A DNA stretch of 64,000 bases from the sequence record OV032902.1; one strand, written 5' to 3'. The notes below the pieces were generated by a model. That model was not told where the DNA came from. It made no database searches and was given only the letters and a program-made list of their open reading frames with translations. A program made the position numbers and the translations under genes. Positions within the stretch are counted from its first letter, which is position 1; each line of letters starts with the position of its first letter. Shown piece by piece: positions 19,182 to 48,915 of this stretch.

Positions 19182-19212
19182 AGGATATCCTATATATCCT
19201 AGGGAGTTTTAA

Positions 19213-20245: not shown

Positions 20246-20255
20246 GGAGAACCAC

Positions 20256-21462: not shown

Positions 21463-21467
21463 TACTT

Positions 21468-21503: not shown

Positions 21504-21519
21504 TGATCTCTTTTTTATT

Positions 21520-21542
21520 TCTATATTACCAACATGGTCATC
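21520..21542 (+). promoter_or_regulatory. Putative early promoter
   Basis: TCTATATTAC-CAACATGGTCAT, T-rich upstream, ahead of ATG 21570. Confidence 0.7.
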
Positions 21543-21569
21543 CGGGCATAAACATAAAAGGAAACCACC

Positions 21570-23305: not shown

Positions 23306-23309
23306 GAAA

Positions 23310-24772: not shown

Positions 24773-24773
24773 A

Positions 24774-25427: not shown

Positions 25428-25437
25428 GGAGCACAGC

Positions 25438-26091: not shown

Positions 26092-26306
26092 TGGATATCA
26101 TCTTTATCTTTGTTTGTTATACGGCAATCCAATTCTTGGGCGGGATGAGTACATCTGTTTTTGCTGATCTTAAGAAAGGTCCTGCGGATGGAATTAGCCC
26201 TGCTATCGGTTGGGCTATCTGGAGTGCTACTCAGTTAGGTCAAATCATTCTCCTGGCTATTATCATCAAGCTAGGTTATCCATATCTGGAGGCTATCTTT
26301 GGCTAA
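26091..26306 (+). CDS. Small two-TM membrane protein
   Basis: GGAGG RBS; two hydrophobic segments. Confidence 0.65.
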   Translation: MDIIFIFVCYTAIQFLGGMSTSVFADLKKGPADGISPAIGWAIWSATQLGQIILLAIIIKLGYPYLEAIFG

Positions 26307-31038: not shown

Positions 31039-31090
31039 CCTACCTGCCGCAGGGCAGGTAGGTATTCTTTGTTCTTTATTTTTTTTTTCT
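31039..31090. terminator. Terminator between convergent blocks (probably bidirectional)
   Basis: CCTACCTGCC-GCAG-GGCAGGTAGG followed by a long T tract, at the +/- strand junction. Confidence 0.8.
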
Positions 31091-31657
31091 TTATAGGTTG
31101 TCGTGGATAACAAGACCATCATGGATAATCATGTCGTCGTAGAACTCAATAAGTTCACCGGCTTCAATCCAGTCACCATAAAAGAAAACACCTTCAGGAA
31201 TCTCAAGCGTTCTATCTCTCAATTCTTCCAGTTTATAAAGTGTAAGTGTCTTAAGCTCATCACCTGAGTTAATCAACATCCACTCGTCGCTTACCCAATC
31301 AACAGACACGCCAGGAGTCCGACGACAATACAGGTTTCCATTGCGGTATACAATGTCTTCCATTCGATAGAGTCGAAATGGCTTGAACGGATTAATATAA
31401 CCTTTCCGTACCTCGATAGGGTGAGCACTTTGTCTCGCTCCTTTCTTGTACCAGGCTTCTCGTTCACCGAGGTAGATAACGCCTCCGCCGCCCTCTGGTT
31501 CTGTCGTGTCAACGATGTTACCGTCTGAGGGGATAGACTCGTAGATTTTGGTCTTTTTGAATTTATCATAGAAGTGATGACTCGTTACGTAGATATTAAT
31601 CGGAGTAAACTCTTGGCCATTCATGACGTAGAGTTTGGTTACATACGCCTTTTCCAT
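31091..31657 (-). CDS. Cassette A gene 7: adaptor/anchor protein (~190 aa), putative virion protein
   Basis: AGTAGGTG RBS before ATG 31657; paralog of 38309..38953 and 48295..48915. Confidence 0.75.
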   Translation of the reverse strand: MEKAYVTKLYVMNGQEFTPINIYVTSHHFYDKFKKTKIYESIPSDGNIVDTTEPEGGGGVIYLGEREAWYKKGARQSAHPIEVRKGYINPFKPFRLYRMEDIVYRNGNLYCRRTPGVSVDWVSDEWMLINSGDELKTLTLYKLEELRDRTLEIPEGVFFYGDWIEAGELIEFYDDMIIHDGLVIHDNL

Positions 31658-31663
31658 GGACAC

Positions 31664-32143
31664 CTACTTAGGGATAGTTCCCAGTAATTCAAAATTAGCA
31701 ATAGCAAACGGAGTGTTAGCGGTAAGCATTACTTTGGTACGCAATAGCTTAATCTCATTCACACCGTCTGCGATAACTACGACACCGATAGGATATTCTT
31801 TTGCTGTGTTGTAAACACCATAAAAGAAACCCTCGTTTTCTTTCGTTGCCCAAAACAAACGCCAGTAGTTATGATCAAACAAAGGTTTGGTCTCACCCTG
31901 AGGAATATCTTTAACGCAACGGAAATAGCCAATTGACGAACGGATTTCATCACCAAAGACATAAGCCTTGCCTTCTTCCATAGACGCATAAGTATTCACG
32001 TCTGGATTGATAGGTGGCTGTTCATACGGGTCAGCATCTGCATTAGTAAATGACACGATGTCATTAATAGTGCGAACGATTTCTTGACCTGTACTATTCA
32101 ATGGGTCAGAAGCAGTAGGCTTAGAAACAATTGGATTCGTCAT
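31664..32143 (-). CDS. Cassette A gene 6: short paralog of the N-terminus of the 500-aa protein
   Basis: STGQEIVRTIN helix motif + GYFRCVKD..NYW.LFW; paralog of 38956..39450. Confidence 0.75.
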   Translation of the reverse strand: MTNPIVSKPTASDPLNSTGQEIVRTINDIVSFTNADADPYEQPPINPDVNTYASMEEGKAYVFGDEIRSSIGYFRCVKDIPQGETKPLFDHNYWRLFWATKENEGFFYGVYNTAKEYPIGVVVIADGVNEIKLLRTKVMLTANTPFAIANFELLGTIPK

Positions 32144-32760
32144 TCTATTTTACCTTCTAGCTCTACGCTGTAACAATACATGAAGCGACGCGAGGTACGC
32201 TTCGGACGGATAACAGACACTGCGGACTGTCTGTATAGCTTACTGTATGGAAGTTCTTTAACAACCGTAACAGCAGCTTGACGATATAGGCTCGCACTAT
32301 CTTTGATGCGGATTACAGAAGTTGCAGTCACGCGATACATGTGAGATGGGTCACGTTGTCGCACAACAGTTACAGCGGCTTGTCTGTATAACTTAGCAGC
32401 TCCCTTAATCTTAATTACCGACACTGCGGACTGTCGATATAGATTAGCGGGTTCTGGCATCTTCATAATGTAATCAACAGACATCGAAGTAAGGTTCGGG
32501 CCTGGATTCGGTTTCAGGATATAATCAATAGAAGCACCCGTCACATTAGGTCCCGGATTAGGAGCCATGATGTAATCAATAGATGCACCATATGTTTGCA
32601 CAGACTGTTGATCTGTATAAACTACTGATATTTCCTGTGCCTTGATATTAGGACCAGTGGCAGGCCCAAGAACTAACGAGAGCTCCTGAGCCTTAATGTT
32701 CGGACCATCTGAAGGACCTAAGACCAAAGACATCTCATGTGCATTGATCTTAGTACTCAT
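32140..32760 (-). CDS. Cassette A gene 5: 11-repeat beta-strand 'scaffold' protein
   Basis: ~17-aa repeats in three classes: 3x (K/N)I(N/K)A(H/Q)E.S.V, 3x (GA/SM)S.DYI, 5x LYRQ.AV.V. Confidence 0.75.
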   Translation of the reverse strand: MSTKINAHEMSLVLGPSDGPNIKAQELSLVLGPATGPNIKAQEISVVYTDQQSVQTYGASIDYIMAPNPGPNVTGASIDYILKPNPGPNLTSMSVDYIMKMPEPANLYRQSAVSVIKIKGAAKLYRQAAVTVVRQRDPSHMYRVTATSVIRIKDSASLYRQAAVTVVKELPYSKLYRQSAVSVIRPKRTSRRFMYCYSVELEGKIE

Positions 32761-34061
32761 TTCCAGGTCTCATACCAAAGCAGAACTTTCTGCGGTTGTG
32801 CTTTAATCTTATCAAAGAAAGCTTTCAAGCTAGAGCTTCCTGACGAACGCATATAGAAAGAACCACCTGACTGAGTGAATACATCACTATAAGTCATGCC
32901 GTCCTCTGTGCCCAGATAGACACGCATGTAAGTATGCACTGCACCATCTGGATCTTCTACAACGTTATTGCCAAGGTTCTTGATGTAACCCCCGCCAGTA
33001 GAGTTAATTTGAAACTCTTTCCAGCCAAAGCCACGCCAAGCACTATTGCCTGAAATCTTGTCAGCGTTATTATCGAAACCAACACCGGCACCAAAGTTAC
33101 CCATGTTAAACAAAGACGCATCAAAGTCAGCTTTTAAACCAAACGACAAACCAGCTACGTCACTAACACTCCATGGCTGTCCTGTCAATGGATTCGTCTC
33201 AGAAACCGTAAGGATAGGACCAGGGGTCAAATCAACGTGTGCGTATAGCGGCCACTTAAGTTCTTCTGTGTCAGTACCATCAGTAACGACAGGAGAGAGC
33301 CTAGGAGCGTCTGTATCAGCCGTTGCGGTAATAACATTAGACATTACAACGGCCTTAATGCTAAGGTCGCCTACAACGCCATTCAGAGGGTCTGTGTGTT
33401 TGAATGTCTGTATAGCAGGAACAGAAGTATTAAAACCTTCTTTAGTAACTGCCGTACCTTGAACGTTAGCTAAGTCACCATCCATCTCCGAGATATCGCC
33501 TAGAGCATCTGGAGCAGATGTAGCCAGACGGAAACCACGAGTGTCACTGTCAGCAACAATGATCTCACCAACATGACAACTGGTTGCACGGAACACACTG
33601 ATATGTGTAGTACCAAAACCAATAACGTTCTTTGCCCATGTAGTTACTTCATTGCCGTCCGCATAAATCGTGATGCCTTGTTCGTTAACATGGAAATCAA
33701 ACGTTCTCATCGAAGAGTTACTGAAAGTATGTGTCTCACGAACATAATTCAATGCATCGCAATACTCTACTTTCATTTTGGCATTACTTACCGAAACTTG
33801 GATGTAACCTTTCGAGCCACTTGAATCATTAAAGTAAAACTTAACGTAGCGAGAAGAAACACTACCGCCAGAAGCAATGGCATGAAGCCAGTATTCTTTC
33901 TCGCCATTCAAATCAATAGTTCGAGTAGAGCTATCGGGAATAGATGATACATCGCCAAAGGAAGCATGCGTACATGGAATCATCGTGGTGCGACCATCTG
34001 AACCATCAATGGCTGCATTGCCTCGAACAGTACTTGCATTAAGTACATTGATAATAGCCAT
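32757..34061 (-). CDS. Cassette A gene 4: ~434-aa putative adhesin/receptor-binding paralog
   Basis: GEIIVADSDTRGFRL...NPLTGQPW core shared by six paralogs. Confidence 0.65.
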   Translation of the reverse strand: MAIINVLNASTVRGNAAIDGSDGRTTMIPCTHASFGDVSSIPDSSTRTIDLNGEKEYWLHAIASGGSVSSRYVKFYFNDSSGSKGYIQVSVSNAKMKVEYCDALNYVRETHTFSNSSMRTFDFHVNEQGITIYADGNEVTTWAKNVIGFGTTHISVFRATSCHVGEIIVADSDTRGFRLATSAPDALGDISEMDGDLANVQGTAVTKEGFNTSVPAIQTFKHTDPLNGVVGDLSIKAVVMSNVITATADTDAPRLSPVVTDGTDTEELKWPLYAHVDLTPGPILTVSETNPLTGQPWSVSDVAGLSFGLKADFDASLFNMGNFGAGVGFDNNADKISGNSAWRGFGWKEFQINSTGGGYIKNLGNNVVEDPDGAVHTYMRVYLGTEDGMTYSDVFTQSGGSFYMRSSGSSSLKAFFDKIKAQPQKVLLWYETWK

Positions 34062-35347
34062 TATAAAGCCTCCACAAATAGACGAACTTTACCGCCAACG
34101 TTATTCTTAAAGATGTTATTGAAAGCAGCAACTTCCGTACCACGGTATCGTGAAACATCCCAAGAAAGAGTATTAGAAGCAACAGTTCCATCAGGTGCAA
34201 CTGCATGAATACGGATTTGATTGGCTCCGTCCCATTTGCCGTTATTCGCAGCACTAAAATAGAACATGTTGGTGTTGTACACCATTGCCAGTGTAATGGC
34301 AGACCCGCTAGGGAAAGTACCTTCAGCTGAACCATTGCCCGTATCCATTCCGTAATACAGGCCACTCTGGGCTACTGTTACAGATACGTCAGACGCTACG
34401 TTCTGGAAACCAAACTGCATTGACTCTGCATCAGCTTTAAGCCATTGTTCGCCAGTATGAGGATTGACGTTAAAGACCTTGGCTGAACCATTAGCGTACT
34501 GCTGTAATAGCTCGAAGGAACCAATGTCGTGATTTGTACCATCAGAAACAATTGGCTTCATGAACGGATTGGCTGCGTCTGCTTTAGCAAAGGAAGTATG
34601 ATTAAAAACCATAGCTTCTGGAACCATACCTGCCACTGAAGAATCAATGCCTTCAAAGGTAAATGTCTGTTGGCTATCAACACCGCCAGTAGACATAAAG
34701 TCATTCGTCAATCGATCAGTATTGATATCACTGACTTCACCAGCCCATTCAGACAATGCGCCTTTAGCTGCTACCTTACCTTCACTTAAACGCATGCCGC
34801 GAGTATCTTTAGTAGAGATAATGATCTCCCCGATACCTGTACTCGTAGCGCCCGTTTCCCACTCGTAGCTAAACGCAGCGATTTGAGTACCGGTATTGAT
34901 GTTCATAGCTAGATCTGGTTTAGCAGTACCGTCTACATAACCATAGACTCTGCCTGTCGTACCATCAATAAACAAATCGATGTCTTTATAGCCTGCGGAA
35001 CCTAGATGCCAGCTAGAGGAGCTTGAGCTAGGTGAGCTGAATGAACCGTGTCCCATCCAAAAGAATGGATACTTGCCGCCGCCCGTATTGTAAAACTCGA
35101 ACTTAACCTTTTCATCACTGTAGGCACGACTAAAGTGCCAGCGGAAATGAACCCAAAAGGAATTCGATGTTTCTGCAAAGTCATGACGGAATTGAGTAAT
35201 GCGCTCGCCCTTAGGAATACGACGAGTAAGAATATTACTGTCCGCAGCAATAGCTCCTTGGCGAGGGTCTACAGAAGAACCAGCCATATTGGAGTTATTG
35301 TTAAGAATACGCATACTGTCCAGATTACCAGTTGCTAGAATAGCCAT
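34061..35347 (-). CDS. Cassette A gene 3: ~428-aa putative adhesin paralog
   Basis: GEIIISTKDTRGMRL...NPHTGEQW core. Confidence 0.65.
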   Translation of the reverse strand: MAILATGNLDSMRILNNNSNMAGSSVDPRQGAIAADSNILTRRIPKGERITQFRHDFAETSNSFWVHFRWHFSRAYSDEKVKFEFYNTGGGKYPFFWMGHGSFSSPSSSSSSWHLGSAGYKDIDLFIDGTTGRVYGYVDGTAKPDLAMNINTGTQIAAFSYEWETGATSTGIGEIIISTKDTRGMRLSEGKVAAKGALSEWAGEVSDINTDRLTNDFMSTGGVDSQQTFTFEGIDSSVAGMVPEAMVFNHTSFAKADAANPFMKPIVSDGTNHDIGSFELLQQYANGSAKVFNVNPHTGEQWLKADAESMQFGFQNVASDVSVTVAQSGLYYGMDTGNGSAEGTFPSGSAITLAMVYNTNMFYFSAANNGKWDGANQIRIHAVAPDGTVASNTLSWDVSRYRGTEVAAFNNIFKNNVGGKVRLFVEAL

Positions 35348-35350
35348 GTC

Positions 35351-36706
35351 TTACTCCTCGAACGTAACAAAGATCGTAGAGTTATCTTTAAACAACTCAT
35401 CTAGTTTTGTACTAGTAACCGCATCGGTTTGATACCAACCACCTACTTGTTCAATGAACGTAACTGTTTCAGTTACACCATCAGCATTACTGAAAGTAGC
35501 ATCTAGGTTCGTCTTACCGCCCCACTGCTTAGTGCCATCGAACTCAAGAGAGATCTTCTTGGTAGAACCATCTCGGAAAAGGGTAAGCATTTCGGTTTGG
35601 TCGTCTGCGGTATGATGCATTGTCTGTGAACCATTGGCTTGGTCCACGCCGTAACGCCCACTAAAGCCTAGCATGGATACTACGTTTACTGTGAAGTTAG
35701 GACCTTTACTGATTTCCACACCTACCTGCATGCTGTTAAGGTCAGCCTTTGTCCAAGGTAAACCTGTGTGAGGGTTAGTCAACAGGATGTCTTGGTGCGT
35801 ACCTAGAGCAGAGTTCTCGTCAAGGTTAGTACCAGCGCCCACAGTATAGTGGTCATTAGAACCAAACATGATTGTATTCTTTAGATGCTTAGCAGCAGCT
35901 GTCGCTTGTGCGTCTGCCACAGAACCAACACCAACAGCAAGGATTTCATACTTGTCCATGTCGACGCCGCCTTTAACGTCACCGACAGCAAAGTTCTGTT
36001 TGCCTGGTCCATAGAACTTGAACGCGTCTTGAGTTAGCTCTTCGCCAAGGTCACTGTATGAACCTTCAGCTTCTTGTTTAACGCCTTCGTTTTCCATGAC
36101 GTGTTCGATAACGCGCATGCCGATAGTTTCTTCGTCTTCAGTCAGAACCATCTGCGTAATAGAGCCGTCACAGATAATACCGTGTGAAAGATTACGCCAG
36201 TCAAGTTGCTGCATCTTAGTTACAGTAGCTTCGCCTTGGAATTGTTCGTCTGCCCAGAATGCTACTTTACCTGTATTGTTATTCATACGAATATCAATAT
36301 TGTAAGCACCACCAGGACGAGTGAATGAAATCTGTGTCTGACCGGCAGAAGAACCATCCGGCATAAACTGAATGACCAGCTTAGTACTTGTTACTGAGAC
36401 CCAGATATTGAATGTACTTAATGCGATGTTTGATTTACCGATACGAATATCAGGATTACCGCCCGCAGAGGTCGCGCAGAAGTGCAGCCAAAGGATACCT
36501 TTCTCCGTGCTGAATTGGCGAAGTGGGAATTTACTGCGTTCGTAGTTGTCAATCAGATGCGACTGACGGTAGTAAGAAAACTTGTTATCGCCTGTGGATG
36601 CATCAAGAATCTTCAGGTTACGAGCACGAAGGTCGTAATCCGAGTTAAACTGGTAGCCGCTTTGTACTTCGTAATTGACGTCGTTTTGAATATATAGAAA
36701 TGACAT
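35351..36706 (-). CDS. Cassette A gene 2: 451-aa putative adhesin paralog
   Basis: MSFLYIQN; ETIGMRV...NPHTGLPW core. Confidence 0.65.
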   Translation of the reverse strand: MSFLYIQNDVNYEVQSGYQFNSDYDLRARNLKILDASTGDNKFSYYRQSHLIDNYERSKFPLRQFSTEKGILWLHFCATSAGGNPDIRIGKSNIALSTFNIWVSVTSTKLVIQFMPDGSSAGQTQISFTRPGGAYNIDIRMNNNTGKVAFWADEQFQGEATVTKMQQLDWRNLSHGIICDGSITQMVLTEDEETIGMRVIEHVMENEGVKQEAEGSYSDLGEELTQDAFKFYGPGKQNFAVGDVKGGVDMDKYEILAVGVGSVADAQATAAAKHLKNTIMFGSNDHYTVGAGTNLDENSALGTHQDILLTNPHTGLPWTKADLNSMQVGVEISKGPNFTVNVVSMLGFSGRYGVDQANGSQTMHHTADDQTEMLTLFRDGSTKKISLEFDGTKQWGGKTNLDATFSNADGVTETVTFIEQVGGWYQTDAVTSTKLDELFKDNSTIFVTFEE

Positions 36707-38208
36707 TATATAACCTTACATTCAAGGGTGAACGCGATGTCTGCTAATGTAGAGTCAGCAGACCCTTTAACTTGTAGTTTGATGAGATCGGTGGTCGAGA
36801 AATTGACCGTGGCAGGTACACTAAACGTGCCTTCTGTTTCGCCTGCATTCCAAGTAACCGTACCAACTTCTGTGTCGTTCTTAAGGATAGAAATAACACA
36901 TGTTCCTGTAGCAGCTGTTTGAGCAACAGCAGAAGATGCTAATGGAATCGTAGCAAGTTGGAACTTACGTACTGGATTGTCTACACATAAAAGCTCGTCA
37001 TCACGTAGTGTTTCAGACAAGAAAGCTTTTGTATAGTGTAACTCAGGTTTAGTGAAGGATAGTTTTTGTGTCCAATCATTCGCATCAAAGGCTTTTGGTA
37101 GAATCGTAGCTTTGGCTGTATAAACATACAGATTGATTCCGTCGGCTACAAGAACACTATCGTCTGCAACATAGGTGTTAGCAGCTGAAAAGTATCCCTT
37201 GAATTCTCCACCTTTGTGGATGGTCTCATGGTTGTCCCACTGAATGGGATCAAAAGGACCGGCAGCAATATTTAATTTTGCAGAGAGAACATCAATCTCA
37301 CCGTCATCATTAATGCGTGTTATCACGTCGTATTTGTTATATGATGCGGTAGCGTCAAATCGATTTCTGTATCGACCGCCAATGAGAAATGTTTCTTGCA
37401 AATTCCAGAGCGAAAGATTAAAAGCAGAAGAGTTGTCGATGTTAGTGCGAGCAACGTATAACTTGATGTTACCGTCAGCTTCTTCTTTGATTACGGTGTC
37501 ACCAGTAATGTAGTTAACACCTGCACCATATCGACCTTTGTAGGAAGGTAGTTGTACGTCTAGTCGTAAAGTCCACTCATTGACATCGAATGCTTTCGGC
37601 TCTATGTCCAATTTACATTCGTATACTTTCGTACCCAGTACCACAAGGTCATGCTCTTCGTAAGAAAGAGCTACGTTGTGATTACCGCGCCAATGCGAGT
37701 GTACGTCATTTACGGTAGCGTTGAGTTCTGTTAGAACTTCAAAGTTATTAGCGTCATACGGAACTGGGTCCGAGAACACTTTTGATTTAATTATCTTTAT
37801 GGTTTCCGACTCAACCTTAAGAAAGACTAAGTCAATGAACAAAGGTTTGCTTGCGTCATACATACCACCCCAGATTTCCCCCGAAATATCCGGAACATAA
37901 AACAAGTCCCAGTAATTACTGTCGGTGATAGGTATGTTGTTTCCCGCAGGCATTTCCTTTACACACTTAAAGAAACCGAACTTCAATCTCATCTCTGTAC
38001 CCAGAGGATACGCAAGATTAGGATTGTAGACAGTTTCTACTTGGACGCCAACTCCAGGAGCTGGTTCCGTCACATGGTCTTCTAAGATACCCGTGATATC
38101 AATCAACCCGTTGACAGTTTCGGCAAGATCTTTACCGTTACTGTTTTCTGGATGATCTTTCTCCGGGTGAGACACTAGCTTTTTAACGTTGTGTGATGTA
38201 GTTCTCAT
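36706..38208 (-). CDS. Cassette A gene 1: 500-aa fibre-like protein with Trp-capped ~55-aa repeats
   Basis: Start MRTTSH at 38208; repeated G.(F/Y)...Y...D.V....Y.A....F....W units; C-terminal beta domain ending ADSTLADIAFTL. Confidence 0.7.
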   Translation of the reverse strand: MRTTSHNVKKLVSHPEKDHPENSNGKDLAETVNGLIDITGILEDHVTEPAPGVGVQVETVYNPNLAYPLGTEMRLKFGFFKCVKEMPAGNNIPITDSNYWDLFYVPDISGEIWGGMYDASKPLFIDLVFLKVESETIKIIKSKVFSDPVPYDANNFEVLTELNATVNDVHSHWRGNHNVALSYEEHDLVVLGTKVYECKLDIEPKAFDVNEWTLRLDVQLPSYKGRYGAGVNYITGDTVIKEEADGNIKLYVARTNIDNSSAFNLSLWNLQETFLIGGRYRNRFDATASYNKYDVITRINDDGEIDVLSAKLNIAAGPFDPIQWDNHETIHKGGEFKGYFSAANTYVADDSVLVADGINLYVYTAKATILPKAFDANDWTQKLSFTKPELHYTKAFLSETLRDDELLCVDNPVRKFQLATIPLASSAVAQTAATGTCVISILKNDTEVGTVTWNAGETEGTFSVPATVNFSTTDLIKLQVKGSADSTLADIAFTLECKVI

Positions 38209-38239
38209 GGATAAAATTTCCATTCTAATTAAAAGAAAC

Positions 38240-38257
38240 GGTCTTCGGGTGACCATA
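38240..38257 (-). promoter_or_regulatory. Putative late promoter (TATG) with +1 hairpin, cassette A
   Basis: Minus strand TTAATTA-TATG, then G(+1)GTC-ACCCGAA-GACC. Confidence 0.55.
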
Positions 38258-38258
38258 T

Positions 38259-38301
38259 AATTAAACCGAAAAAATAAACCTCCTGACCCGAAGGCCAGGA
38301 G
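38259..38301 (-). terminator. Intrinsic terminator ending cassette B
   Basis: Minus strand CTCCTGGCC-TTCG-GGTCAGGAG followed by GTTTATTTTTT. Confidence 0.85.
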
Positions 38302-38308
38302 AATTTAG

Positions 38309-38953
38309 TTAGTCTTCATCAGGACTTGTACTACCATCATCTCGGAAAAGACGCAAGTTATCATGGAGTATCATCTCATCCCAAAAGGATGTGGTATCCG
38401 TGATAATCTCAGGCTTCTCTTCTTCGACGGTATCTGGATCGAACGGTTCTTCTGCGTACTCCAATCGGTCGCCGTAAAAGAACACGCCGTATTTCATTTC
38501 GAAAGGTTCTGTTTCAAAGTCAATAGAATCGTAAACAGTCAATGCTGGTATCTGGTGGCCAGACTCTACTTCTACCCATTCTTCAGGACGCCAAATTCCT
38601 TTACCTGCATCTAAGCGAGAAAAGATTTTGCCGCCATAAGAGATAACGTCAAACTTGTCGTAATGCTCTTCTGGATTAAAGTAAGAGATGAAACCTTGGT
38701 GTACTGTGATAGGAAGAAGCTTACGGTTATTCTTACCGGTGTAAAAAGCCTTGTCTTCTTCCAACAGGATAACGCCCGTATCCTTTTCGTCAATAACACT
38801 ATCGACAAGATACTGGACGTCACCATTGATTTCATATACTGCATCCTTTACAAAGCGTTCGTAAAACGTACGACTTGTAAGGTAAACGTTCAGTGGAACT
38901 TCTAGACTTTGGTCAATCGTGAATAGTCGAACGATAAAACTTCTGTCTAGCAT
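38309..38953 (-). CDS. Cassette B gene 7: adaptor/anchor protein, 214 aa
   Basis: Paralog of 31091..31657 (F.V.L..., GF(I)..F.P...Y...D.I.Y.G...W). Confidence 0.75.
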   Translation of the reverse strand: MLDRSFIVRLFTIDQSLEVPLNVYLTSRTFYERFVKDAVYEINGDVQYLVDSVIDEKDTGVILLEEDKAFYTGKNNRKLLPITVHQGFISYFNPEEHYDKFDVISYGGKIFSRLDAGKGIWRPEEWVEVESGHQIPALTVYDSIDFETEPFEMKYGVFFYGDRLEYAEEPFDPDTVEEEKPEIITDTTSFWDEMILHDNLRLFRDDGSTSPDED

Positions 38954-38955
38954 AA

Positions 38956-39450
38956 TTACACCTTAGGAATACGTTGTGTGATTTTGAATTTCGAAATATC
39001 GAAAGCGGTATTAGCAGGGATGAGAACTTGTGATACAAGCACTAGAATCTCAGAGCCCTGTTCGTACAGCACAGTAACACCAGCAGGATACTCTAGTGTG
39101 TTGGTGTACATACCGCCGAATGCCGTAAGATCTTGGGCTGGCATCCAGAATAGCTTCCAATAGTTTCGATCTGTAATATCTACAGTCTGACTTGCAGAGA
39201 TGTCCTGAACACAACGAAAGTAGCCTTGTGCGCTGCGTAGTTCATCGCCTACTGCATAAGCCTTAGACTGATCGTAATAATCGTAAGTGTTCACGTTAGG
39301 ATTTACCTCTGGTTCAGCATTGATAGATTCAGCGCCTGTACGCTCTACAAGGAAGTTAGCCGTGTTAATGATAGTTTGGTACAGATCATTAGCAGGGTCT
39401 TCCTTAGTAGACATAGAGACGATTTTACGTAAGGGACGTTCAGTGTTCAT
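38956..39450 (-). CDS. Cassette B gene 6: short paralog of the N-terminus of the 499-aa protein
   Basis: VNPNVNTY...GDELRSAQGYFRCVQDI...NYWKLFW. Confidence 0.75.
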   Translation of the reverse strand: MNTERPLRKIVSMSTKEDPANDLYQTIINTANFLVERTGAESINAEPEVNPNVNTYDYYDQSKAYAVGDELRSAQGYFRCVQDISASQTVDITDRNYWKLFWMPAQDLTAFGGMYTNTLEYPAGVTVLYEQGSEILVLVSQVLIPANTAFDISKFKITQRIPKV

Positions 39451-39459
39451 ACATTCTCC

Positions 39460-40083
39460 TTACTTCAAATCTACAACGTATGAGTTTACGAAACGGCGTC
39501 GCTTAGGTCCCGCAGGAACAACGACAACCGATACTGTTTGCTTGTGTACTTTACCGTACCAGTAAATAGGTGCGACAACAGTAGAAGCTGTTTGCTTATG
39601 TAGACGTGCCTCCGGTGGTGGAGGAGCAATAACAATCGAAATCGTTTGTTTGTGTAGCTTCGCCTTCAAGTTACTTGGAGCAACAACTACCGATACAGTT
39701 TGTTTATGTACGTCTGCCAATGGAGCAGGGAACATAACTACATCAATATAAGCTGACTTAACATTAGGTCCTGGCTGTGGAGCTAGAACAACATCCTGAT
39801 AAGCTGACTTGACAAAAGGACCTAGTTCGGGCTGAAGGACTACGTCTTGATAAGCTGACTTTATATTTGGGCCTGAAATGGGAGCGAAGACAACGTCTTT
39901 ATACAAGCTCTTCGTCGTAACCAGATTTTGTGTGCGCATTACAACAGAAATCTGCTGGTGAGAGACACGAGGACCTGGGTCCGGTTTCATAACAACAGAA
40001 ATCTGCTGATGTGCTACCTTTGGACCCGGTTCTGGTTTTAATACAAGAGAGACCTGTTGATGGCGTACATCAGTTGTACTCAT
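39460..40083 (-). CDS. Cassette B gene 5: 11-repeat beta-strand 'scaffold' protein
   Basis: 3x HQQ(V/I)S.V, 4x KS(A/L)Y.DVV, 4x HKQT.S.V; C-terminal RRF..Y.V.L as in cassette A. Confidence 0.75.
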   Translation of the reverse strand: MSTTDVRHQQVSLVLKPEPGPKVAHQQISVVMKPDPGPRVSHQQISVVMRTQNLVTTKSLYKDVVFAPISGPNIKSAYQDVVLQPELGPFVKSAYQDVVLAPQPGPNVKSAYIDVVMFPAPLADVHKQTVSVVVAPSNLKAKLHKQTISIVIAPPPPEARLHKQTASTVVAPIYWYGKVHKQTVSVVVVPAGPKRRRFVNSYVVDLK

Positions 40084-40093
40084 GGTCTACTCC

Positions 40094-41416
40094 TTATGAG
40101 ATTGGACGGATAATCGCCTTAACGGTTGTATTCTCGGCAGCCACAAAATCATCACGGCAGCCGTCAGGGACTACGCCTTCGTATCTGGTAGAGCCATCAT
40201 ACTCTAGAGTAAATTCATACCCTTTTCCGTTAACAAGTACCGACACTAAAATCTTAGACTCGCCAGTGCTGATGAGTCCATTGCTACCGCCAGTGAACGA
40301 AATATTGAATTCGGAAGGACTTCCTGACTTAGAAAAGAAACGATTAATAGTTTCTCCTGTCATTGCCTTGGTTGTAGAACCAAAGATGACCGTAGTGGCC
40401 ATTCCGTATTCGTTGGATGCTGACTTACCGACTGTGATTTCAAAATCCGACTCTAATGCCTGAACACCGAATTGCATGTTATCGAAATCGGTGTTTGTCC
40501 ATACTTGTCCCGTAAGCGGATTAGTATGCATGATAGTTGTCAAAGAACCAGCGTGACTGTCCGGCCCCTGTCCGATAGGAGTTGCGCACTCTTTAGGCGA
40601 GCCGCTGTCATTAACTATATTAGCCAAGAACGGAGCTGTAGACGATGACGTCGCAGACGCTACCGTGCCAATGATAACAGCCTCTGGAACAAGACCTGCG
40701 GCCTTAGCAGAAGTAGGAATATTCTCATAGTCATACGTTTGTGAGCTGGCACCAGTTGCAGATGCGAATGTAATCGGGTCTAGCTGATCGCCAGAAATAT
40801 CCGCATAGCTGCCACTAAAGCCAGTCAGTGCACCATCACTTTCTGCGTCTACTGTTAGCAGGCGCATTCCTCGTGTATCCGAATCAGAAACAATAATCTC
40901 TGTCATTCGATTACCATTTAATGCACGAGCAGCAAAACCATGTAAGGTATTTACAGGATGCGATGTACCCATCCAACCGGCAGTGTCTTCTCCATCGATT
41001 ACACCGTCACGGTAAATTCTAACGGTATTGCCGGTAATCTGAATGTCCCAGTCATGCGGGTCATTTGAACCAACGGCACCCGCTGTAGGAGTAATCGTGG
41101 AAACCAGTGACGCTCCCTGATAAACCTTGAATAGTCCATCAGAGCCATCAATCAAAACGGCAGCAATGTCTGCATTATTGGTACTCTTGAAACGGGCAGC
41201 TACATCTCGACTGCCTGCTCGAAAGTGAATCCAGATAGAACCCGTAGTGGTTTCCTCAAATGGTGCGAAATCAGCAAAGTTGTTATCAATCGACCAAGAT
41301 TGAAAATCGCCGGAGTTAGATGTCGCCGAGGTACTCGTACGTTGGTTACCAGCCTGCAAAGAGTTAGCTAGAGGAACATGCATCGTTGCGATGTTTATTA
41401 CGTGTAAAATAGCCAT
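40094..41416 (-). CDS. Cassette B gene 4: 440-aa putative adhesin paralog
   Basis: TEIIVSDSDTRGMRL...NPLTGQVW core. Confidence 0.65.
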   Translation of the reverse strand: MAILHVINIATMHVPLANSLQAGNQRTSTSATSNSGDFQSWSIDNNFADFAPFEETTTGSIWIHFRAGSRDVAARFKSTNNADIAAVLIDGSDGLFKVYQGASLVSTITPTAGAVGSNDPHDWDIQITGNTVRIYRDGVIDGEDTAGWMGTSHPVNTLHGFAARALNGNRMTEIIVSDSDTRGMRLLTVDAESDGALTGFSGSYADISGDQLDPITFASATGASSQTYDYENIPTSAKAAGLVPEAVIIGTVASATSSSTAPFLANIVNDSGSPKECATPIGQGPDSHAGSLTTIMHTNPLTGQVWTNTDFDNMQFGVQALESDFEITVGKSASNEYGMATTVIFGSTTKAMTGETINRFFSKSGSPSEFNISFTGGSNGLISTGESKILVSVLVNGKGYEFTLEYDGSTRYEGVVPDGCRDDFVAAENTTVKAIIRPIS

Positions 41417-41427
41417 GGTCTAACTCC

Positions 41428-42759
41428 TTATGCATTACCGATGATCGTGAAGTATAACTTCTTACCTACGTCTTTCTCAATAGATTCAGAAATACGAAGC
41501 GCGAGGTCACTGCCGAAAAGTCGGAAGTAGTTACCAGTTTCATGAGGAATCTCTAAAATTCCACCTGGTCCGTCTTCTACCGCAATTTTAAGCGTCACCG
41601 AACTAAAGCCGTTGTCGCCACCACCGTCAAACTCTAGGAACATGTCGCCATTCTGTTTAAATGCTAACGCATAGAGCGCAGCATGAGCGCCACCATGTGT
41701 CATGTCACCAGAAATAATAGTAGAGTTAAGTTTACCGTAGCCGAATTGAACTGGGCTACCGCCAAGGTTATCGGTGTCCGTTACAACAGTCATTGCAACA
41801 TTGCGAATACGCAGACTAGATGTATCGATCAGAGCAGATGACCATTGACCACCAGTAAGAGGAGCCACAGCATCAATGTTCTGGTTTAGGTTTGCATCCG
41901 TTTCTGTCGACAGTACACGGTAACCGATAAGATGCTCATCTGTACCGTCAAACAGAGAGTACTCCAAGACAGGAGAGTCAGGTGTACCTACGATGTCTGC
42001 AACAGAACCCACGTTAACTCCAACAACCTTCATGCCAGAAAGCTGAACGTTAGAGAAGTTAAGGTCAAGTACTGAGCCAGCAGCAGGAGATGACATAGCA
42101 GCTTCAGTAAGCGATGTAGTTTGAATATCAGAAAGAGAACCACTGAAATCATTCTGTGCGCCGATAGAAGCGGGCTTGGTGGATTGAACGCGCCAGCCGC
42201 GAGTATCTGTATCCGAGAAACAGATTTCAGACAAATAGGCACTGGAACTTGCCAGATTAAACGTCATGTATGATAACTGACGAGATCCCATATAGCCGTT
42301 CGAACCACCAAAGGCACGTGCGCCGTTTATATAAACGTCAAACTTGTTTTCCGCTCCATTCCAATGAATATCGACGTCATTGAAATCGTTCTGACTCATA
42401 CTAGGACTCAGACCACCGGTTGAAGGAGTAGACGATGAATTGTTTGCACCAAAAGCATTAGCAGACAGTTTAAAGTTAGTGTAACCAGCATCAGAGCCGC
42501 CTGCCTCATAATGGACCTTCATGGTAAGGTTACCAGAACTAGGTCTTAGACGGAAATGCATCCAAAGATTTTCAGTGGACAATGTAACCGGTAGACGGAA
42601 GAAGGTATCCGAATCTGTCCATTGGCTAAATGCCCAGTCAGTAACAGTATCCAGGGCAGTAGCGTCAACAACGCCAGCGGTACGCTCATCTTCTGACGTG
42701 TATTCTTTACCTGACTGAACAGAAGCGTTGCCTGGGTTGAGAGTATGAATAATAGTCAT
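41428..42759 (-). CDS. Cassette B gene 3: 443-aa putative adhesin paralog
   Basis: SEICFSDTDTRGWRV...APLTGGQW core. Confidence 0.65.
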   Translation of the reverse strand: MTIIHTLNPGNASVQSGKEYTSEDERTAGVVDATALDTVTDWAFSQWTDSDTFFRLPVTLSTENLWMHFRLRPSSGNLTMKVHYEAGGSDAGYTNFKLSANAFGANNSSSTPSTGGLSPSMSQNDFNDVDIHWNGAENKFDVYINGARAFGGSNGYMGSRQLSYMTFNLASSSAYLSEICFSDTDTRGWRVQSTKPASIGAQNDFSGSLSDIQTTSLTEAAMSSPAAGSVLDLNFSNVQLSGMKVVGVNVGSVADIVGTPDSPVLEYSLFDGTDEHLIGYRVLSTETDANLNQNIDAVAPLTGGQWSSALIDTSSLRIRNVAMTVVTDTDNLGGSPVQFGYGKLNSTIISGDMTHGGAHAALYALAFKQNGDMFLEFDGGGDNGFSSVTLKIAVEDGPGGILEIPHETGNYFRLFGSDLALRISESIEKDVGKKLYFTIIGNA

Positions 42760-42769
42760 TTTCTTATCC

Positions 42770-44125
42770 TTATACTGTTACGTAAATCTTAACTAGTTTA
42801 CCTAGCTGGCCTTGCAGCCAAGTAGTAATCGCAGGGTCTGTTACACTGTAATCGATTGTAGCGAACGTCACGGTAGCCGATGCTTCCGTACCGTCTTCAC
42901 TCACAAGACGAACAGTAACAGTATTGGCATTATCGAACTTAGTATCGGTATCGAAGCGAATAGTGAAAACGTTACTTGCAGTAATGGCATTACAGCGAAT
43001 CAAAGCATTACCCGCAGTCTTGTCGGTTGAGATAGAAGTAAACTCACCAGCAAAGCCATCAGCATAGCCAAAGTAAGTTCCGCTATCTGCAACAATCATT
43101 CGACCAACCGGCGGAGCACTGTAAGAGAAACCAGCTTCTAGAGCATTGATTTCAGCAATTGTCCATGCTGCACCAGTAGCAGGGTTTATTTCCATGATGT
43201 CTTTCTGATGCAAAGCATCTGAAGCCGTATCAATGATTGAACCTTTGCCTTTGTATTCAGTACCACCTATCTTGATAACGTTCTCACCGAAGTTATCTTC
43301 AAATAGTTCATCTGCCGAGGCAATAGTGTTGATAGACACGGCACGTACTTCCATGTCAGTCAGGTCTACACCTGCTTTAATGTCTTCGTACGTAAATGTT
43401 TGACTACCAGCGGCGTCAGTAGACATACCTGCCTCAGTTAGCGTGATTGATTGAACATCACTTAGGTTGCCTGTAAGGTCAGTACTTGTACCTAGTGCTT
43501 CTGGTGGAAGTTCGATGAGACGCATACCTAGAGTAGGGATACCCTGTGTAATGATTACTTCGGCAGCACCTGAGCTTACATTAGACGAGTCATTATACCA
43601 CCATTTAAAATCGGAAGCATCCAGAGTCGCTATGCTAGAGTTAGTGCCTTCGCCTACTTTATTTTCGTTAACAAAAGCAGCCCATGCACCAGAAGTAATA
43701 TTGATCTTCACGTCTATGGAACAACGCTGGTTAGTAGGGATAACCGTTTCGCCATAGATTTCAACCGAAGAACCTTTTTCGACATAGATGCCTAGGTTAC
43801 TGGAAGAAGTACCAAAGATCATAAAGTGCGCGCGATTAGAACCTTTTCTTTCGCCTTCAGGGAAGAAGTCGATTTGACAAGCACTAAAGCCTTCGTTCAT
43901 ACGGAAATGAAACCACAGATCATCTGTTTCGTTTTCGAAATCTTCCAGAACACGATAGTTGTAATGCATGTTGTGATCTATGCCGCGCTGATAGTCTGGG
44001 TGACGGTGGCCGTTAGACGTAGACGTCGTTGTACGTTTATCTGTGTTAGTAAAAACGTCATTAGGACCTAAGTCTTTACGGAAGTTAGAGTCACACTCGT
44101 TTTGGATGTATAGGAATTTTGCCAT
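42770..44125 (-). CDS. Cassette B gene 2: 451-aa putative adhesin paralog
   Basis: MAKFLYIQN; PTLGMRL...NPATGAAW core. Confidence 0.65.
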   Translation of the reverse strand: MAKFLYIQNECDSNFRKDLGPNDVFTNTDKRTTTSTSNGHRHPDYQRGIDHNMHYNYRVLEDFENETDDLWFHFRMNEGFSACQIDFFPEGERKGSNRAHFMIFGTSSSNLGIYVEKGSSVEIYGETVIPTNQRCSIDVKINITSGAWAAFVNENKVGEGTNSSIATLDASDFKWWYNDSSNVSSGAAEVIITQGIPTLGMRLIELPPEALGTSTDLTGNLSDVQSITLTEAGMSTDAAGSQTFTYEDIKAGVDLTDMEVRAVSINTIASADELFEDNFGENVIKIGGTEYKGKGSIIDTASDALHQKDIMEINPATGAAWTIAEINALEAGFSYSAPPVGRMIVADSGTYFGYADGFAGEFTSISTDKTAGNALIRCNAITASNVFTIRFDTDTKFDNANTVTVRLVSEDGTEASATVTFATIDYSVTDPAITTWLQGQLGKLVKIYVTV

Positions 44126-44135
44126 GATAAAAACC

Positions 44136-45635
44136 TTATATTACCTGACCTTCGATGGTTACAGAAATGTTAGCAAGAGTAGTATCAGCTGTACCATCTT
44201 GAGTTAACACTAAAGTATCACCGGTAGTGAATGTAGAGTCCGCAGCGAATACAACTGTAGCTGTTGTTGCTCCGGCAGCAAAGTTCAAACGTCCTACCGC
44301 AGTAGAACCATTAGAGATGATTAAAGATGTAGCATTCGTAGAGGCTACTTGAGCTACTGCACTAATACCTGCGCCACCAGCAGCAATTGTAAAGTCACGA
44401 ACAGGAACCTCAATAAAGAGTACCTCGTCGTCTGCGATGGTGTCCATGATAACGGCTTTGGTTACATGAAGAGCAGGCTTAACAAACGTTTGATTAGAAT
44501 CCCACTTGCTTAGATCAATAGGTCCAGCAGGGATTGTTTCTTTAGCGGTCAGTACTTGTAGGTTACCTGAGCCGTCATCATAGAGGACAACGTCACCTTC
44601 GCCATAAGTATTAGCGGCACTAAAGTCACCTCGGAATTCACCACCTTTAAGGATGGTAGTTTTAACCGTCCACTCACCAGCTTGGAATGGACCAGCAGTA
44701 ATTAAAGCATTCGCTTCCAGGATGTCGATTTCACCGTCAGCGTTTTCATTGGTAACGATATCAAACGGGTCATAGTTAGTCACCGTTGAGAAGGCACCTT
44801 TAAACTTACCGCCTACTTTGAAGATAGCCTTTAGCGACCACTGAGCTGAATTGAAAGCACCAGTAGGAACATCTGCGTCTGCTTCATATAGGTTATGATA
44901 ACCCACCAAGTCAACGTAAATGACCAAGTCACCTTTCTTATATGCAACGGCCGTATCGAACGTACCTTTATAAGTAGGCTGGTAGACAGTAGTAAGGATT
45001 GTCCATGCCGCTGGATTGAATGTACCCGCTAACTGACTTGTGTTAGCTTGATAAACGATGTTCTCAATGTAAACGATATCTTCTTCATCATAATCAGAAG
45101 TTTCGCTGAACATACCTTTCCATGCAGCTGAACCACCTGTCGACATAACTTCATGCAAAACAGTAAAGTTGTTTTCGTCGTAAGGTGTATCTGCGTCGAT
45201 TGGACCAATAGCCTTAATAATAAGAATACGGTCTGGCTCAACTTTGTATAGTACCTCACCTTGAACAATGGCTTGAGTCTCGTCAAACTCTCCGCCGAAT
45301 ACATCACCTACTGACGAAGGTAGGTAAAATAAGTCCCAGTGATTTTTATCAGTCAAAGGGATATTGTTGTTGGCTGGCATATCTTCCGTACAGCGAAAGA
45401 AACCAAAAGGAGTTCTGATTTCTGAACCTACTAAATACGGGAAGTTCGGATTGTAGACTGTGTCGACTACGACAGCAGGGGGTGCATCAGGAACCAGACT
45501 TGGGTCTAGTTCGGCACCAGTAATATCAATCAGCCCGTTAAGTACCTCAGCCAGATCTTTACCGTTCGGGTTACGAGGGTCGTATCTGTCTGGATAAGTA
45601 ATGAGCTTCTTTATCTCATGAGAGGTTGTACGCAT
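44136..45635 (-). CDS. Cassette B gene 1: 499-aa fibre-like protein with Trp-capped repeats
   Basis: GGAG RBS before MRTTSHEIKK at 45635; colinear paralog of 36706..38208. Confidence 0.7.
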   Translation of the reverse strand: MRTTSHEIKKLITYPDRYDPRNPNGKDLAEVLNGLIDITGAELDPSLVPDAPPAVVVDTVYNPNFPYLVGSEIRTPFGFFRCTEDMPANNNIPLTDKNHWDLFYLPSSVGDVFGGEFDETQAIVQGEVLYKVEPDRILIIKAIGPIDADTPYDENNFTVLHEVMSTGGSAAWKGMFSETSDYDEEDIVYIENIVYQANTSQLAGTFNPAAWTILTTVYQPTYKGTFDTAVAYKKGDLVIYVDLVGYHNLYEADADVPTGAFNSAQWSLKAIFKVGGKFKGAFSTVTNYDPFDIVTNENADGEIDILEANALITAGPFQAGEWTVKTTILKGGEFRGDFSAANTYGEGDVVLYDDGSGNLQVLTAKETIPAGPIDLSKWDSNQTFVKPALHVTKAVIMDTIADDEVLFIEVPVRDFTIAAGGAGISAVAQVASTNATSLIISNGSTAVGRLNFAAGATTATVVFAADSTFTTGDTLVLTQDGTADTTLANISVTIEGQVI

Positions 45636-45664
45636 GTTATGAGCTCCGTCGTACATTAATCTTA

Positions 45665-45681
45665 GTGGTCTTTGCCACATA
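45665..45681 (-). promoter_or_regulatory. Putative late promoter (TATG) with +1 hairpin, cassette B
   Basis: Minus strand TTAATTT-TATG, then G(+1)TGG-CAAAGA-CCAC. Confidence 0.55.
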
Positions 45682-45682
45682 A

Positions 45683-45727
45683 AATTAAACCGAAAAATAA
45701 ACTCCCCCTGCCCGAAGGCAGGAGGAG
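45683..45727 (-). terminator. Intrinsic terminator ending the tailspike unit
   Basis: Minus strand CTCCTCCTGCC-TTCG-GGCAGGGGGAG followed by TTTATTTTT. Confidence 0.85.
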
Positions 45728-45733
45728 GATATA

Positions 45734-48298: not shown

Positions 48299-48915
48299 TT
48301 GTGAATCTCCAACTGATTGTGAATTTCAAGATCACGATGTAGCTCGCCCAATGTAGAGCCAGCTTGGTAAAGTGATTCGATATTTGGGTCTGTGTCCTTA
48401 GGACGTCTCATTCGATTCTTGGTCCTTGTAGGACGACCCAACTCGATGATCATAGAATCACCAAGTACAGTAGATTCTGCACCACCTGTATCAGAGTAGT
48501 ACGTAACATCGGTAAGGGTATATTCAGGACGCACAAGAACCCACTCTTTGCGCTTGAACGGACCTTTACCAGGAGCACGACGAATGTAGACATTACCACC
48601 AACAATGGCTAAGTCTTCATCTGCGTAGTACTTTTCAGGGTCGAAGGGAGCTACATAAGCCGTACCTGATTCTAAAGGTAGTAGAGTACCCTCAGTAACA
48701 GCACGATAAAACTTTCCTTCTTTACTTAGCAATGAACCCAGAAAACGACGAACGTAAGTTTCGCTTTCTGTAATCGCTACTTGGGTTTCAACATTAGTGC
48801 TGAAGTCCGCAACCAAGCGACCATGAAGATCTTTACTAACGATATAGTAATTGGTATTCTCGATAGTTCCATCTGTCTTGAATAACGCCAACCTTAAAAT
48901 AAGTTCATTTTTCAT
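48295..48915 (-). CDS. Adaptor/anchor protein, 206 aa (third paralog)
   Basis: Same AGTAGGTGTC leader as 31657; PFDPEKYY.DED...GG.VY.RR.PG.G.F...EW.LV motif. Confidence 0.75.
   Translation of the reverse strand: MKNELILRLALFKTDGTIENTNYYIVSKDLHGRLVADFSTNVETQVAITESETYVRRFLGSLLSKEGKFYRAVTEGTLLPLESGTAYVAPFDPEKYYADEDLAIVGGNVYIRRAPGKGPFKRKEWVLVRPEYTLTDVTYYSDTGGAESTVLGDSMIIELGRPTRTKNRMRRPKDTDPNIESLYQAGSTLGELHRDLEIHNQLEIHK

Follow-up and report, generated by a model that had tools for sequence, protein, structure and literature searches.

The systems closest to the locus described here come from several kinds of phage. The locus is a minus-strand block of sixteen genes (31091–48915) in a 64,000-nucleotide stretch of sequence record OV032902.1, Vibrio phage vB_VpaM_sm033 (hereafter sm033); we call this stretch the window. 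The block includes two diverged copies, A and B, of a seven-gene cassette. In phiKZ, which belongs to the same broad group of phages, the gp131 paralogues share an N-terminal anchor and differ in their distal parts, as is proposed for our locus, and serve twelve fibres at two kinds of site (PMC13250141). The DUF7941 proteins of Goslar occur as many paralogues at the baseplate periphery, some of them carbohydrate-binding, with a proposed role in host finding, and are reported to be specific to chimalliviruses (PMC13742148). Connectors in A511 and Milano adopt a ‘beads on a string’ arrangement (PMC10811340), and the gene for gp124, the tail spike of the Agrobacterium phages Milano and 7-7-1 (PDB 8fqc and 9rkv), is followed by small paralogous partner genes. 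Jelly-roll sugar-binding modules have been added to tail-tip proteins in the evolved Dit of Lactobacillus phage J-1 (CBM2, 5ly8) and in a tailspike domain of Pan3 (9vyh). The G segment of Mu and the C segment of P1 hold alternative tail-fibre gene sets that are switched by DNA inversion.

Set beside these systems, the block is probably a variable, late-transcribed tail-appendage locus, in which the two cassettes supply knob-tipped fibres with sets of lectin-like proteins and are joined by a third, partial unit. We call the cassette a tail-appendage module mainly on the ground that its lectin-like family lies in the tail regions of three tail types, accompanied in Vibrio phages by a knob and a repeat protein. 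By analogy, it is best read as working like the multi-component receptor-binding complexes of large myophages. The distal domains of phiKZ are seven-bladed propellers and that phage has no seven-gene cassette, whereas the distal parts here would be knobs with lectin-like partners. Unlike DUF7941, the lectin-like family also occurs in T5-like and N4-like phages and in gene transfer agent (GTA)-like siphophages; the sixteen proteins of the block gave no Pfam match to DUF7941 at E ≤ 0.1, although the presence of that model in our Pfam copy is unconfirmed. The J-1 and Pan3 modules are domains inserted in Dit or the spike, whereas here separate proteins of 330–450 amino acids (aa) stand in ordered arrays. 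Mu and P1 likewise carry two diverged fibre sets per genome, but those of sm033 lie in tandem, in the same orientation and with their own promoter-like sites. Multiple receptor-binding sets are expected in jumbo phages; new are the composition of the cassette, a putative lectin-type tail role and partners for a large unknown family, and cassette-wise variation at one locus. The features of the block, in order of transcription, are as follows.

48295..48915, minus strand: U206, 206 aa, a gene-7 paralogue and the first gene of the minus-strand block (BLASTP, gene-7 profile)
45734..48298, minus strand: U854, 854 aa, with an N-terminal motif as in genes 1 and 6 (N-domain profile)
45702..45727, minus strand: hairpin terminator after U854 and before cassette B, with an 11-bp stem (8 G-C pairs), a TTCG loop and a T run
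45678..45701, minus strand: AT-rich stretch ahead of cassette B, promoter-like, with TATG as its end; the G at 45678 is the predicted +1 and begins a 4-bp stem-loop
44136..45635, minus strand: B1, 499 aa, fibre-like; the N-terminal motif, then tandem repeats of ~55 aa, then a knob at the C terminus (PHROG matches, repeat and knob analysis)
42770..44125, minus strand: B2, 451 aa, lectin-like (phrog_6368, E 4e-24; AlphaFold2 model)
41428..42759, minus strand: B3, 443 aa, lectin-like (phrog_6368, E 2.5e-15)
40094..41416, minus strand: B4, 440 aa, lectin-like (phrog_6368, E 2e-23)
39460..40083, minus strand: B5, 207 aa, 11 units of 17–18 aa (tandem DNA repeats, unit parsing)
38956..39450, minus strand: B6, 164 aa, the N-terminal part of gene 1 without the knob (BLASTP to B1, E 1e-21, and A1, E 2e-19)
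38309..38953, minus strand: B7, 214 aa, small protein, last gene of cassette B (BLASTP to A7, E 1e-30)
38279..38302, minus strand: hairpin terminator between cassettes B and A, with a 10-bp stem, a TTCG loop and a T run
38254..38278, minus strand: AT-rich stretch ahead of cassette A, promoter-like, with TATG as its end; the G at 38254 is the predicted +1 and begins a 4-bp stem-loop
36706..38208, minus strand: A1, 500 aa, fibre-like, B1 paralogue (42.5% identity to B1; phrog_7049, E 4e-6)
35351..36706, minus strand: A2, 451 aa, lectin-like (phrog_6368, E 5e-15)
34061..35347, minus strand: A3, 428 aa, lectin-like (phrog_6368, E 1.4e-13)
32757..34061, minus strand: A4, 434 aa, lectin-like (phrog_6368, E 5e-19)
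32140..32760, minus strand: A5, 206 aa, 11 units of 17 aa (repeat parsing; 39% identity to gene 5 of cassette 1, C1_5, on contig L014)
31664..32143, minus strand: A6, 159 aa, gene-1 paralogue with the N-terminal part only (BLASTP to A1, E 1e-21, and B6, E 2.5e-43)
31091..31657, minus strand: A7, 188 aa, small protein, last gene of cassette A (B7 paralogy; 37% identity to C1_7 of L014)
31039..31062, both strands: two-way hairpin terminator with a 10-bp stem, serving cassette A and a converging K+-transporter-like gene

The block comprises three transcription units on one strand (minus), U206–U854, B1–B7 and A1–A7. The gene lengths in the initial annotation (499/451/443/440/207/164/214 aa for B and 500/451/428/434/206/159/188 aa for A) agree with the open reading frame (ORF) list and with the annotation of OV032902.1. 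That account took in two cassettes; the unit proves larger, with the third partial unit (U206 and U854) upstream of cassette B. All 14 cassette ORFs are open and begin with ATG, their intergenic spacing is −4 to 11 nt, most have a Shine-Dalgarno-like site ahead of them, and their G+C content resembles the rest of the window. Every gene of the region, the 14 cassette genes, U206 and U854 included, is annotated ‘hypothetical protein’ in OV032902.1.

Positions 31091–45727 of the window are 100% identical to sm033 (OV032902.1, 320,253 bp), with equal coordinates. A tblastn search with B1 across 50,697 phage records located gene-1 relatives only in sm033, vB_pir03 (pir03) and C-ZP2022, the latter two with genomes of ~287 kb each. 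Word-indexed protein searches with B2, B1 and A1 gave matches almost only from sm033 itself, a viral_contigs scan with B1 gave none, and in the literature we found no paper mentioning sm033 or C-ZP2022. Pir03 has a phiKZ-type sheath and cell-puncturing device (spike), and its best matches are to phage BONAISHI (PMC7765460). Because the relatives pir03 and C-ZP2022 have the phiKZ-type sheath and spike and BONAISHI-matching proteins, the sm033 lineage is one of phiKZ-like jumbo phages. The other relatives used below (L008–L015) are metagenomic contigs.

The positional paralogy proposed at the outset is borne out at all seven positions (BLASTP, 25–44% identity, E 1e-16 to 1e-134). The A and B copies of gene 1 are 42.5% identical over 515 aa (E 1e-134), those of gene 2 27.7% (E 2e-23), gene 3 25.4% (E 1e-16), gene 4 29.4% (E 8e-21), gene 5 31.7% (E 3e-25), gene 6 43.9% (E 2.5e-43) and gene 7 29.5% (E 1e-30). 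The BLASTP matches span whole proteins and are not confined to low-complexity motifs. A3 scores higher against B4 (29.4%, E 3e-27) than against its positional partner B3. At the DNA level, A and B have no similarity beyond a shared regulatory stretch, and their divergence is therefore deep.

Genes 2, 3 and 4 belong to one family, whose six members in the window share 17–25% pairwise identity. Each of them matches nearly the whole profile (positions ~1–326 of 328, E 1.4e-13 to 4e-24) of phrog_6368, a PHROGs family of ~330-aa proteins to which no fold, role or partner had been assigned; relative to that family, the jumbo-phage forms add a C-terminal domain (~376–451) and occur in ordered arrays of 3 to 6 paralogues. 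Searching 1.84 billion representatives with a six-paralogue profile retrieved 2,283 proteins at E ≤ 1e-3. Most of these are ~330 aa long and cover profile positions 1–332, the ~440-aa form adding the C-terminal domain. An alignment of 134 family members gave a confident AlphaFold2 model of B2 (pLDDT 87, pTM 0.84), differentiated into a jelly-roll (~1–215), a very confident β-sandwich (216–340) and a small C-terminal domain (376–451). The C-terminal domain is the most diverged (8–38%) and the second domain the most conserved (24–46%).

Foldseek searches of the PDB with this model place calreticulin lectin domains at the top (probability 1.0, target TM 0.47–0.54, rmsd 4.4–5.1). An earlier, poor model from six sequences (pLDDT 59) had given fold matches that included an alginate lyase, 5ly8 and 9vyh, which we treat as a lead only. 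Laminin_G_3 is found in 6 of the 134 members, and matches to the GH16 β-glucanase jelly-roll are weak (E 0.004 over ~65 residues). The authors of the pir03 study independently found IPR013320 and the HHpred hit 3ZYP for the lectin-like proteins of that phage (PMC7765460). Taken together, the model and these matches place genes 2–4 in the ConA-like lectin/glucanase fold class, and sugar binding by them is likely. With the six-paralogue profile, PDB sequences gave no informative match. The receptor-binding domain of clostridial neurotoxins was considered as a counterpart and set aside: Foldseek gives TM 0.2–0.25, rmsd 17–22 Å and 7–10% identity, with no sequence match; these chains enter the list through the generic lectin-type jelly-roll, and the likeness is one of fold class only. 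Metagenomic contig L019 (217–2243) carries two tandem ~330-aa members of the family with no knob gene; arrays of lectin-like paralogues thus also arise outside jumbo phages.

The same fold class leads to a different proposal, in which genes 2–4 would be ConA-like glucanases or lyases that cut host polysaccharide, either borne on a fibre or released, and the cassettes would be depolymerase sets for different capsule or O-antigen types. It can call on the GH16 profile matches, on the alginate lyase among the fold matches of the first model and on the label ‘glycoside hydrolase’ in some records and in the pir03 paper (PMC7765460). The columns conserved in ≥90% of the 134 members are, however, M, W, T, G, G, P and W, with no acidic, basic or other catalytic-type column among them, and the best fold matches are lectins. 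The lack of a conserved catalytic-type residue makes binding likelier than catalysis, and we regard the enzymatic proposal as very unlikely.

Returning to genes 2–4 as lectin-like parts of a tail appendage, the context of their relatives is informative. In VCPH, a T5-like Vibrio phage, the tail module closes, beyond pb4 and a collar-like gene, with a series of knob, lectin-like and gene-5-like genes. Their order is 820 aa (C-terminal knob), 502 aa (lectin-like), 187 aa (knob), 440 aa (lectin-like), 336 aa (gene-5-like), 123 aa (knob), 466 aa (lectin-like) and 66 aa (gene-5-like). The N4-like Vibrio phage 1.188.A alternates knob genes (128, 340 and 164 aa) with lectin-like genes (332 and 346 aa), located between head-completion adaptor and lysis genes. 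N4-type phages encode their tail appendages between the adaptor and lysis genes. In siphophage vB_RpoS-V10 and one metagenomic contig, the ~330-aa form sits between tape measure and GTA-type hub genes. Adjacency of knob and lectin-like genes is present in the Vibrio phages and absent in the GTA-like siphophages. By gene neighbourhood, the family is thus tail-associated in three unrelated tail types.

This distribution also bears on whether the products might instead decorate the virion away from the baseplate, as collar, sheath or head fibres that make encounters with cells or particles likelier and are not the receptor-binding fibres by which infection is triggered. Such a role would suit the remoteness of the block from baseplate genes; additional filament systems, with domains that bind carbohydrate, do exist in chimalliviruses (Goslar DUF7941, PMC13742148), and a VCPH protein annotated ‘capsid decoration protein’ ends in a C-terminal knob. 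It fits less well with a family that lies between tape measure and hub genes in siphophages and in the tail-fibre or appendage region of T5-like and N4-like phages, and we consider it quite unlikely.

The initial annotation had proposed virion appendages. A tail-appendage reading gains from the knob of gene 1, with its tail-fibre PHROG matches, from the lectin fold of genes 2–4 and from the module context, while location on the virion stays at the level of inference. The C-terminal ~120 aa of gene 1 match three PHROGs annotated ‘tail fiber protein’ or ‘tail protein’ (phrog_7049, phrog_9851 and phrog_11660); B1 itself matches phrog_9851 at E 9e-8 and phrog_7049 (‘tail fiber protein’) at E 8e-4. 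Seven of nine aligned knob sequences match phrog_7049, the best at E 4.7e-11 and B1 and A1 themselves at E 2e-4 to 4e-6. Against the PDB, the knob profile finds weak matches to residues 490–579 of the tail spikes of phages 7-7-1 and Milano (E 0.027 and 1.3), a domain that forms the C-terminal jelly-roll of a trimeric spike (PMC10811340). Aligned in this way to gp124, the knob is marginal in score, and the neighbouring gp126 is weakly knob-like (13 bits). The middle of gp124 is a β-helix, whereas that of gene 1 consists of four tandem ~55-aa units. The garland proteins gp125 and gp127 of Milano (~140 aa, T4 gp8-like fold) were tried as counterparts of the cassette and show no similarity to genes 2–7.

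The ~55-aa units recur within the N-terminal part of gene 1 as well; gene 6 has two of them and gene 7 has one. Their sequences are at most CBM5/12-like, and A1 gives no Pfam match to CBM_5_12. Across paralogues and orthologues, gene-1 identity is highest in the first 45 residues (60–69%) and lowest in the repeats (34–42%), a gradient commonly seen in fibres whose attachment end is conserved. From these features we regard gene 1 as a fibre-like protein with a tail-fibre-type knob, presumably a trimer. Over its first ~160 aa, gene 1 has a homologue in gene 6 (E ~1e-20), which retains the motif and two repeat units and lacks the knob. One N-terminal motif, the best-conserved part, is common to A1, B1, A6, B6 and U854. 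In U854 only the N-terminal ~25 residues resemble it (N-domain profile match to residues 14–39, E 8e-4 in a small database), and a knob is absent; the protein has a 57% identical orthologue on L008 and no informative Pfam, PHROG, NCBIfam or PDB sequence match. Searches of PDB sequences with B1 and with the N-domain profile matched no phage protein, and neither the B1 tblastn nor the PDB sequence searches returned a phiKZ match, so that membership of the gp131 family by sequence was rejected.

A shared anchor raises the prospect that both cassettes and U854 feed one mixed structure through the common N-terminal motif and do not build separate appendages. The motif is indeed common to five proteins and their best-conserved part, at 60–69%, and in phiKZ the fibres are held at a hetero-hexameric base, where N-terminal segments from different gp131-like paralogues are arranged about a six-helix bundle (PMC13250141). 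The phiKZ proteins, however, have no detectable sequence similarity to these, each cassette is complete, separately promoted (as predicted) and conserved as a set in L014, and pir03 has the B type alone. On balance we find a mixed structure, although the leading rival, unlikely.

Gene 5 contains eleven 17–18-aa units in both cassettes, visible as tandem 51- and 54-nt DNA repeats. Within each unit, a stretch in which hydrophobic residues alternate leads into a turn rich in Pro and Gly, and the units fall into three sub-types (3/3/5 in A5, 3/4/4 in B5). Sub-types and lectin-like paralogues thus both number three per cassette; pir03 combines six paralogues with a much longer gene 5 and more sub-types. 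Gene-5 homologues are found in pir03 (626 aa), L014 and VCPH. The first ~300 aa of the pir03 gene 5 (contig L002, 23144–25024) were examined as a possible lectin-like member and match none of the cassette profiles. U206 is a gene-7 paralogue (BLASTP to B7, E 7e-13, and A7, E 1e-8; gene-7 profile, E 1.5e-86) with orthologues on L008 (54%) and on L014, after cassette 2 (C2; 49%). B7 had no library match.

The equality of three sub-types and three paralogues, with the bead arrangement of A511 and Milano, suggests a docking model that is speculative. In it, each gene-5 sub-type would dock one lectin-like paralogue by strand addition, forming a ‘beads on a string’ module on the gene-1 fibre with gene 6 as adaptor at the anchor; one fixed locus would take up, lose, reorder and expand whole cassettes, and the trio of knob, lectin-like protein and string would be an unrecognised receptor-binding module of the myo-, sipho- and podophages that infect marine bacteria. 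We hold this fuller version to be doubtful. The match of sub-types to paralogues is so far a numerical coincidence, and unit counts in relatives are only roughly proportional.

Comparison with the relatives shows how the block varies. In pir03 and C-ZP2022 a single cassette holds genes 1 (331 aa), 5 (626 aa), 6 and 7 together with six lectin-like paralogues; each of its genes is nearer B than A, and a further contig has at least five paralogues. As to the suggestion in the initial annotation that two separately assembled appendage types with different receptor specificities could broaden host range, pir03, described as broad in host range, carries the B type alone, in expanded form. L008 has U206-like (54%), U854-like (57%) and B1-like (50%) genes and two B2-type genes, its gene 1 likewise being preceded by the hairpin and the TATG stretch; L009, from the same sample (SRR24799356), has A2-like and A3-like genes. 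On the 64-kb contig L014, a U206-like gene comes after two seven-gene cassettes in tandem. Cassette 1 (C1) is gene by gene the orthologue of A (43/31/35/27/39/40/37% identity) and cassette 2 that of B and of the pir03 cassette.

A neighbour-joining tree of the lectin-like proteins resolves six orthogroups (A2, A3, A4, B2, B3 and B4; bootstrap 85–100), so that the phylogeny of positional orthologues proposed as a check finds orthologues of each cassette in relatives. A2 groups with C1_2 of L014 and with L009 (bootstrap 91), A3 with C1_3 and L009 (100), A4 with C1_4 (89), B3 with pir6, pir7 and C2_3 (100) and B4 with C2_4 (86). One-to-one orthology in L014 at seven positions implies that both cassette types are old and each position is individually maintained, and the tandem A and B sets on that contig uphold the earlier view of deep divergence with both copies long kept. 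The divergent gene cluster beside the block, which starts with a HAD_SAK_2 polynucleotide-kinase-like gene, shows synteny across sm033, pir03 and L014. The block occupies 31091–48915 in the sm033 window, 7150–21317 in L014 and 14001–26160 in pir03 (L002), with contents U-B-A in sm033, A-B-U in L014 and expanded B alone in pir03. Given the synteny of the divergent genes, the site of the block is fixed, and what changes from phage to phage is the set of whole units it holds. The sm033 layout is retained in eight near-identical contigs.

These comparisons speak to a further alternative, a redundant duplication with one copy decaying or silent. Deep divergence itself could be cited for it, and nothing beyond. 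The 14 open genes with their tight operon spacing and ribosome-binding sites, the conserved regulatory stretches on both cassettes, the full orthologue sets of both types in L014 and the layout shared by eight near-identical contigs all oppose it, and we find it scarcely credible. The cassettes are instead old, intact and conserved, and both are maintained.

Only two long gaps interrupt the block, of 98 and 100 nt, one ahead of each cassette. Each has a strong G+C-rich hairpin with a TTCG loop and T run, then an AT-rich stretch ending in TATG, in agreement with the earlier statement that each cassette has its own TATG site and terminator. The AT-rich stretches of A and B are 79% identical over 42 nt, a pattern seen nowhere else in the 64 kb. 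Late promoters of phiKZ consist of TATG with G as the start site and are read by the non-virion RNA polymerase (PMC4666361). TATG lies 43–46 nt ahead of the ATG of A1 and B1, and likewise in the L008 and pir03 cassettes, although the motif is short. From the G of TATG, the predicted first transcribed bases form a 4–5-bp stem-loop (45665–45678 and 38240–38254, minus strand) whose stem letters differ; it recurs in L008, in pir03 and between the two L014 cassettes, with energies of −4.5 to −8.1 kcal/mol versus shuffle means of −1 to −3. This stem-loop could be part of the promoter or a 5′-end structure of late transcripts, and, by analogy with phiKZ, separate late transcription of each unit is a reasonable inference.

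The ATG within each TATG is in frame with gene 1 and would add 16 codons in A (38209–38256) and 15 in B (45636–45680), which is why a mechanical ORF list gives 516 aa for A1 and 514 aa for B1. The two extensions are unlike each other and the corresponding L008 frame has a stop, so the annotated gene-1 starts are likely correct. An invertible host-range switch of the Mu G or P1 C type was considered and rejected: the cassettes are in direct tandem, and the longest inverted pairs (19–35 nt, 71–89%) include none at the cassette borders. Given the tandem orientation and the lack of long inverted repeats, both cassettes are presumably expressed together.

The genes flanking the block are non-structural, early-looking and on the plus strand (endonuclease, DHFR, K+-transporter-like and ligase genes). 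The K+-transporter-like gene (30369–31031, plus strand; Kef-type or Ion_trans_2-like) converges on cassette A and shares the hairpin at 31039–31062. At the start of the genome record (13–12762, plus strand), three giant repeat proteins of 2508, 535 and 1165 aa each match phrog_17273, phrog_22899, phrog_3649 and phrog_35701 in 2 to 14 stretches; the 19-kb counterpart of their genes in pir03 is labelled a PARCEL/DUF285 protein (PMC7765460).

Under the interpretation as a tail-appendage locus, gene 1 would provide a knob-tipped fibre. On it would be carried the products of genes 2–4, three non-redundant lectin-like proteins, likely sugar-binding and receptor-contacting, each predicted to combine a ConA-like lectin domain, a conserved β-sandwich and a variable C-terminal domain. 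Gene 5, a putative chain of strands and turns, may be the shaft or ‘string’ that holds the three lectin-like kinds; gene 6, the anchoring part alone, may act as an adaptor at the attachment site; and gene 7 may be a small accessory or assembly protein. With two cassettes, and U854 sharing the anchor motif, the particle would display several kinds of distal binding parts. In this reading, the products would be on the virion, touch their partners, bind sugar, be made late and perhaps differ in receptor between the cassettes.

Several observations weigh against this interpretation. The 16 products are put on the virion by gene context, and the block is not adjacent to known baseplate genes but sits amid early-looking plus-strand genes. 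Glycanases and lyases share the ConA-like fold, the knob has a marginal counterpart in the PDB (E 0.027), and the CBM_5_12 match of B1 (residues 177–211) scores below the Pfam gathering threshold (23.3 versus 26.2 bits). Searches of PDB sequences, Pfam, PHROGs and NCBIfam were uninformative for the N-terminal part, for genes 5 and 7 and for U854. In the tree, the pairing of A with B at positions 2–4 is unsupported (13–41%).

For the family, these results would give phrog_6368, with more than 2,000 representatives, a lectin-type fold, recurring partners and a tail-appendage context in three unrelated phage types, and a block of marine phage dark matter becomes a testable receptor-binding module. 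In phiKZ-like Vibrio phages, which are considered for use in aquaculture, this is the locus most likely to decide the target of attachment. For the diversification of attachment organs in chimallivirus-type phages, it may represent a third solution, alongside those of phiKZ (gp131 paralogues) and Goslar (DUF7941 filaments).

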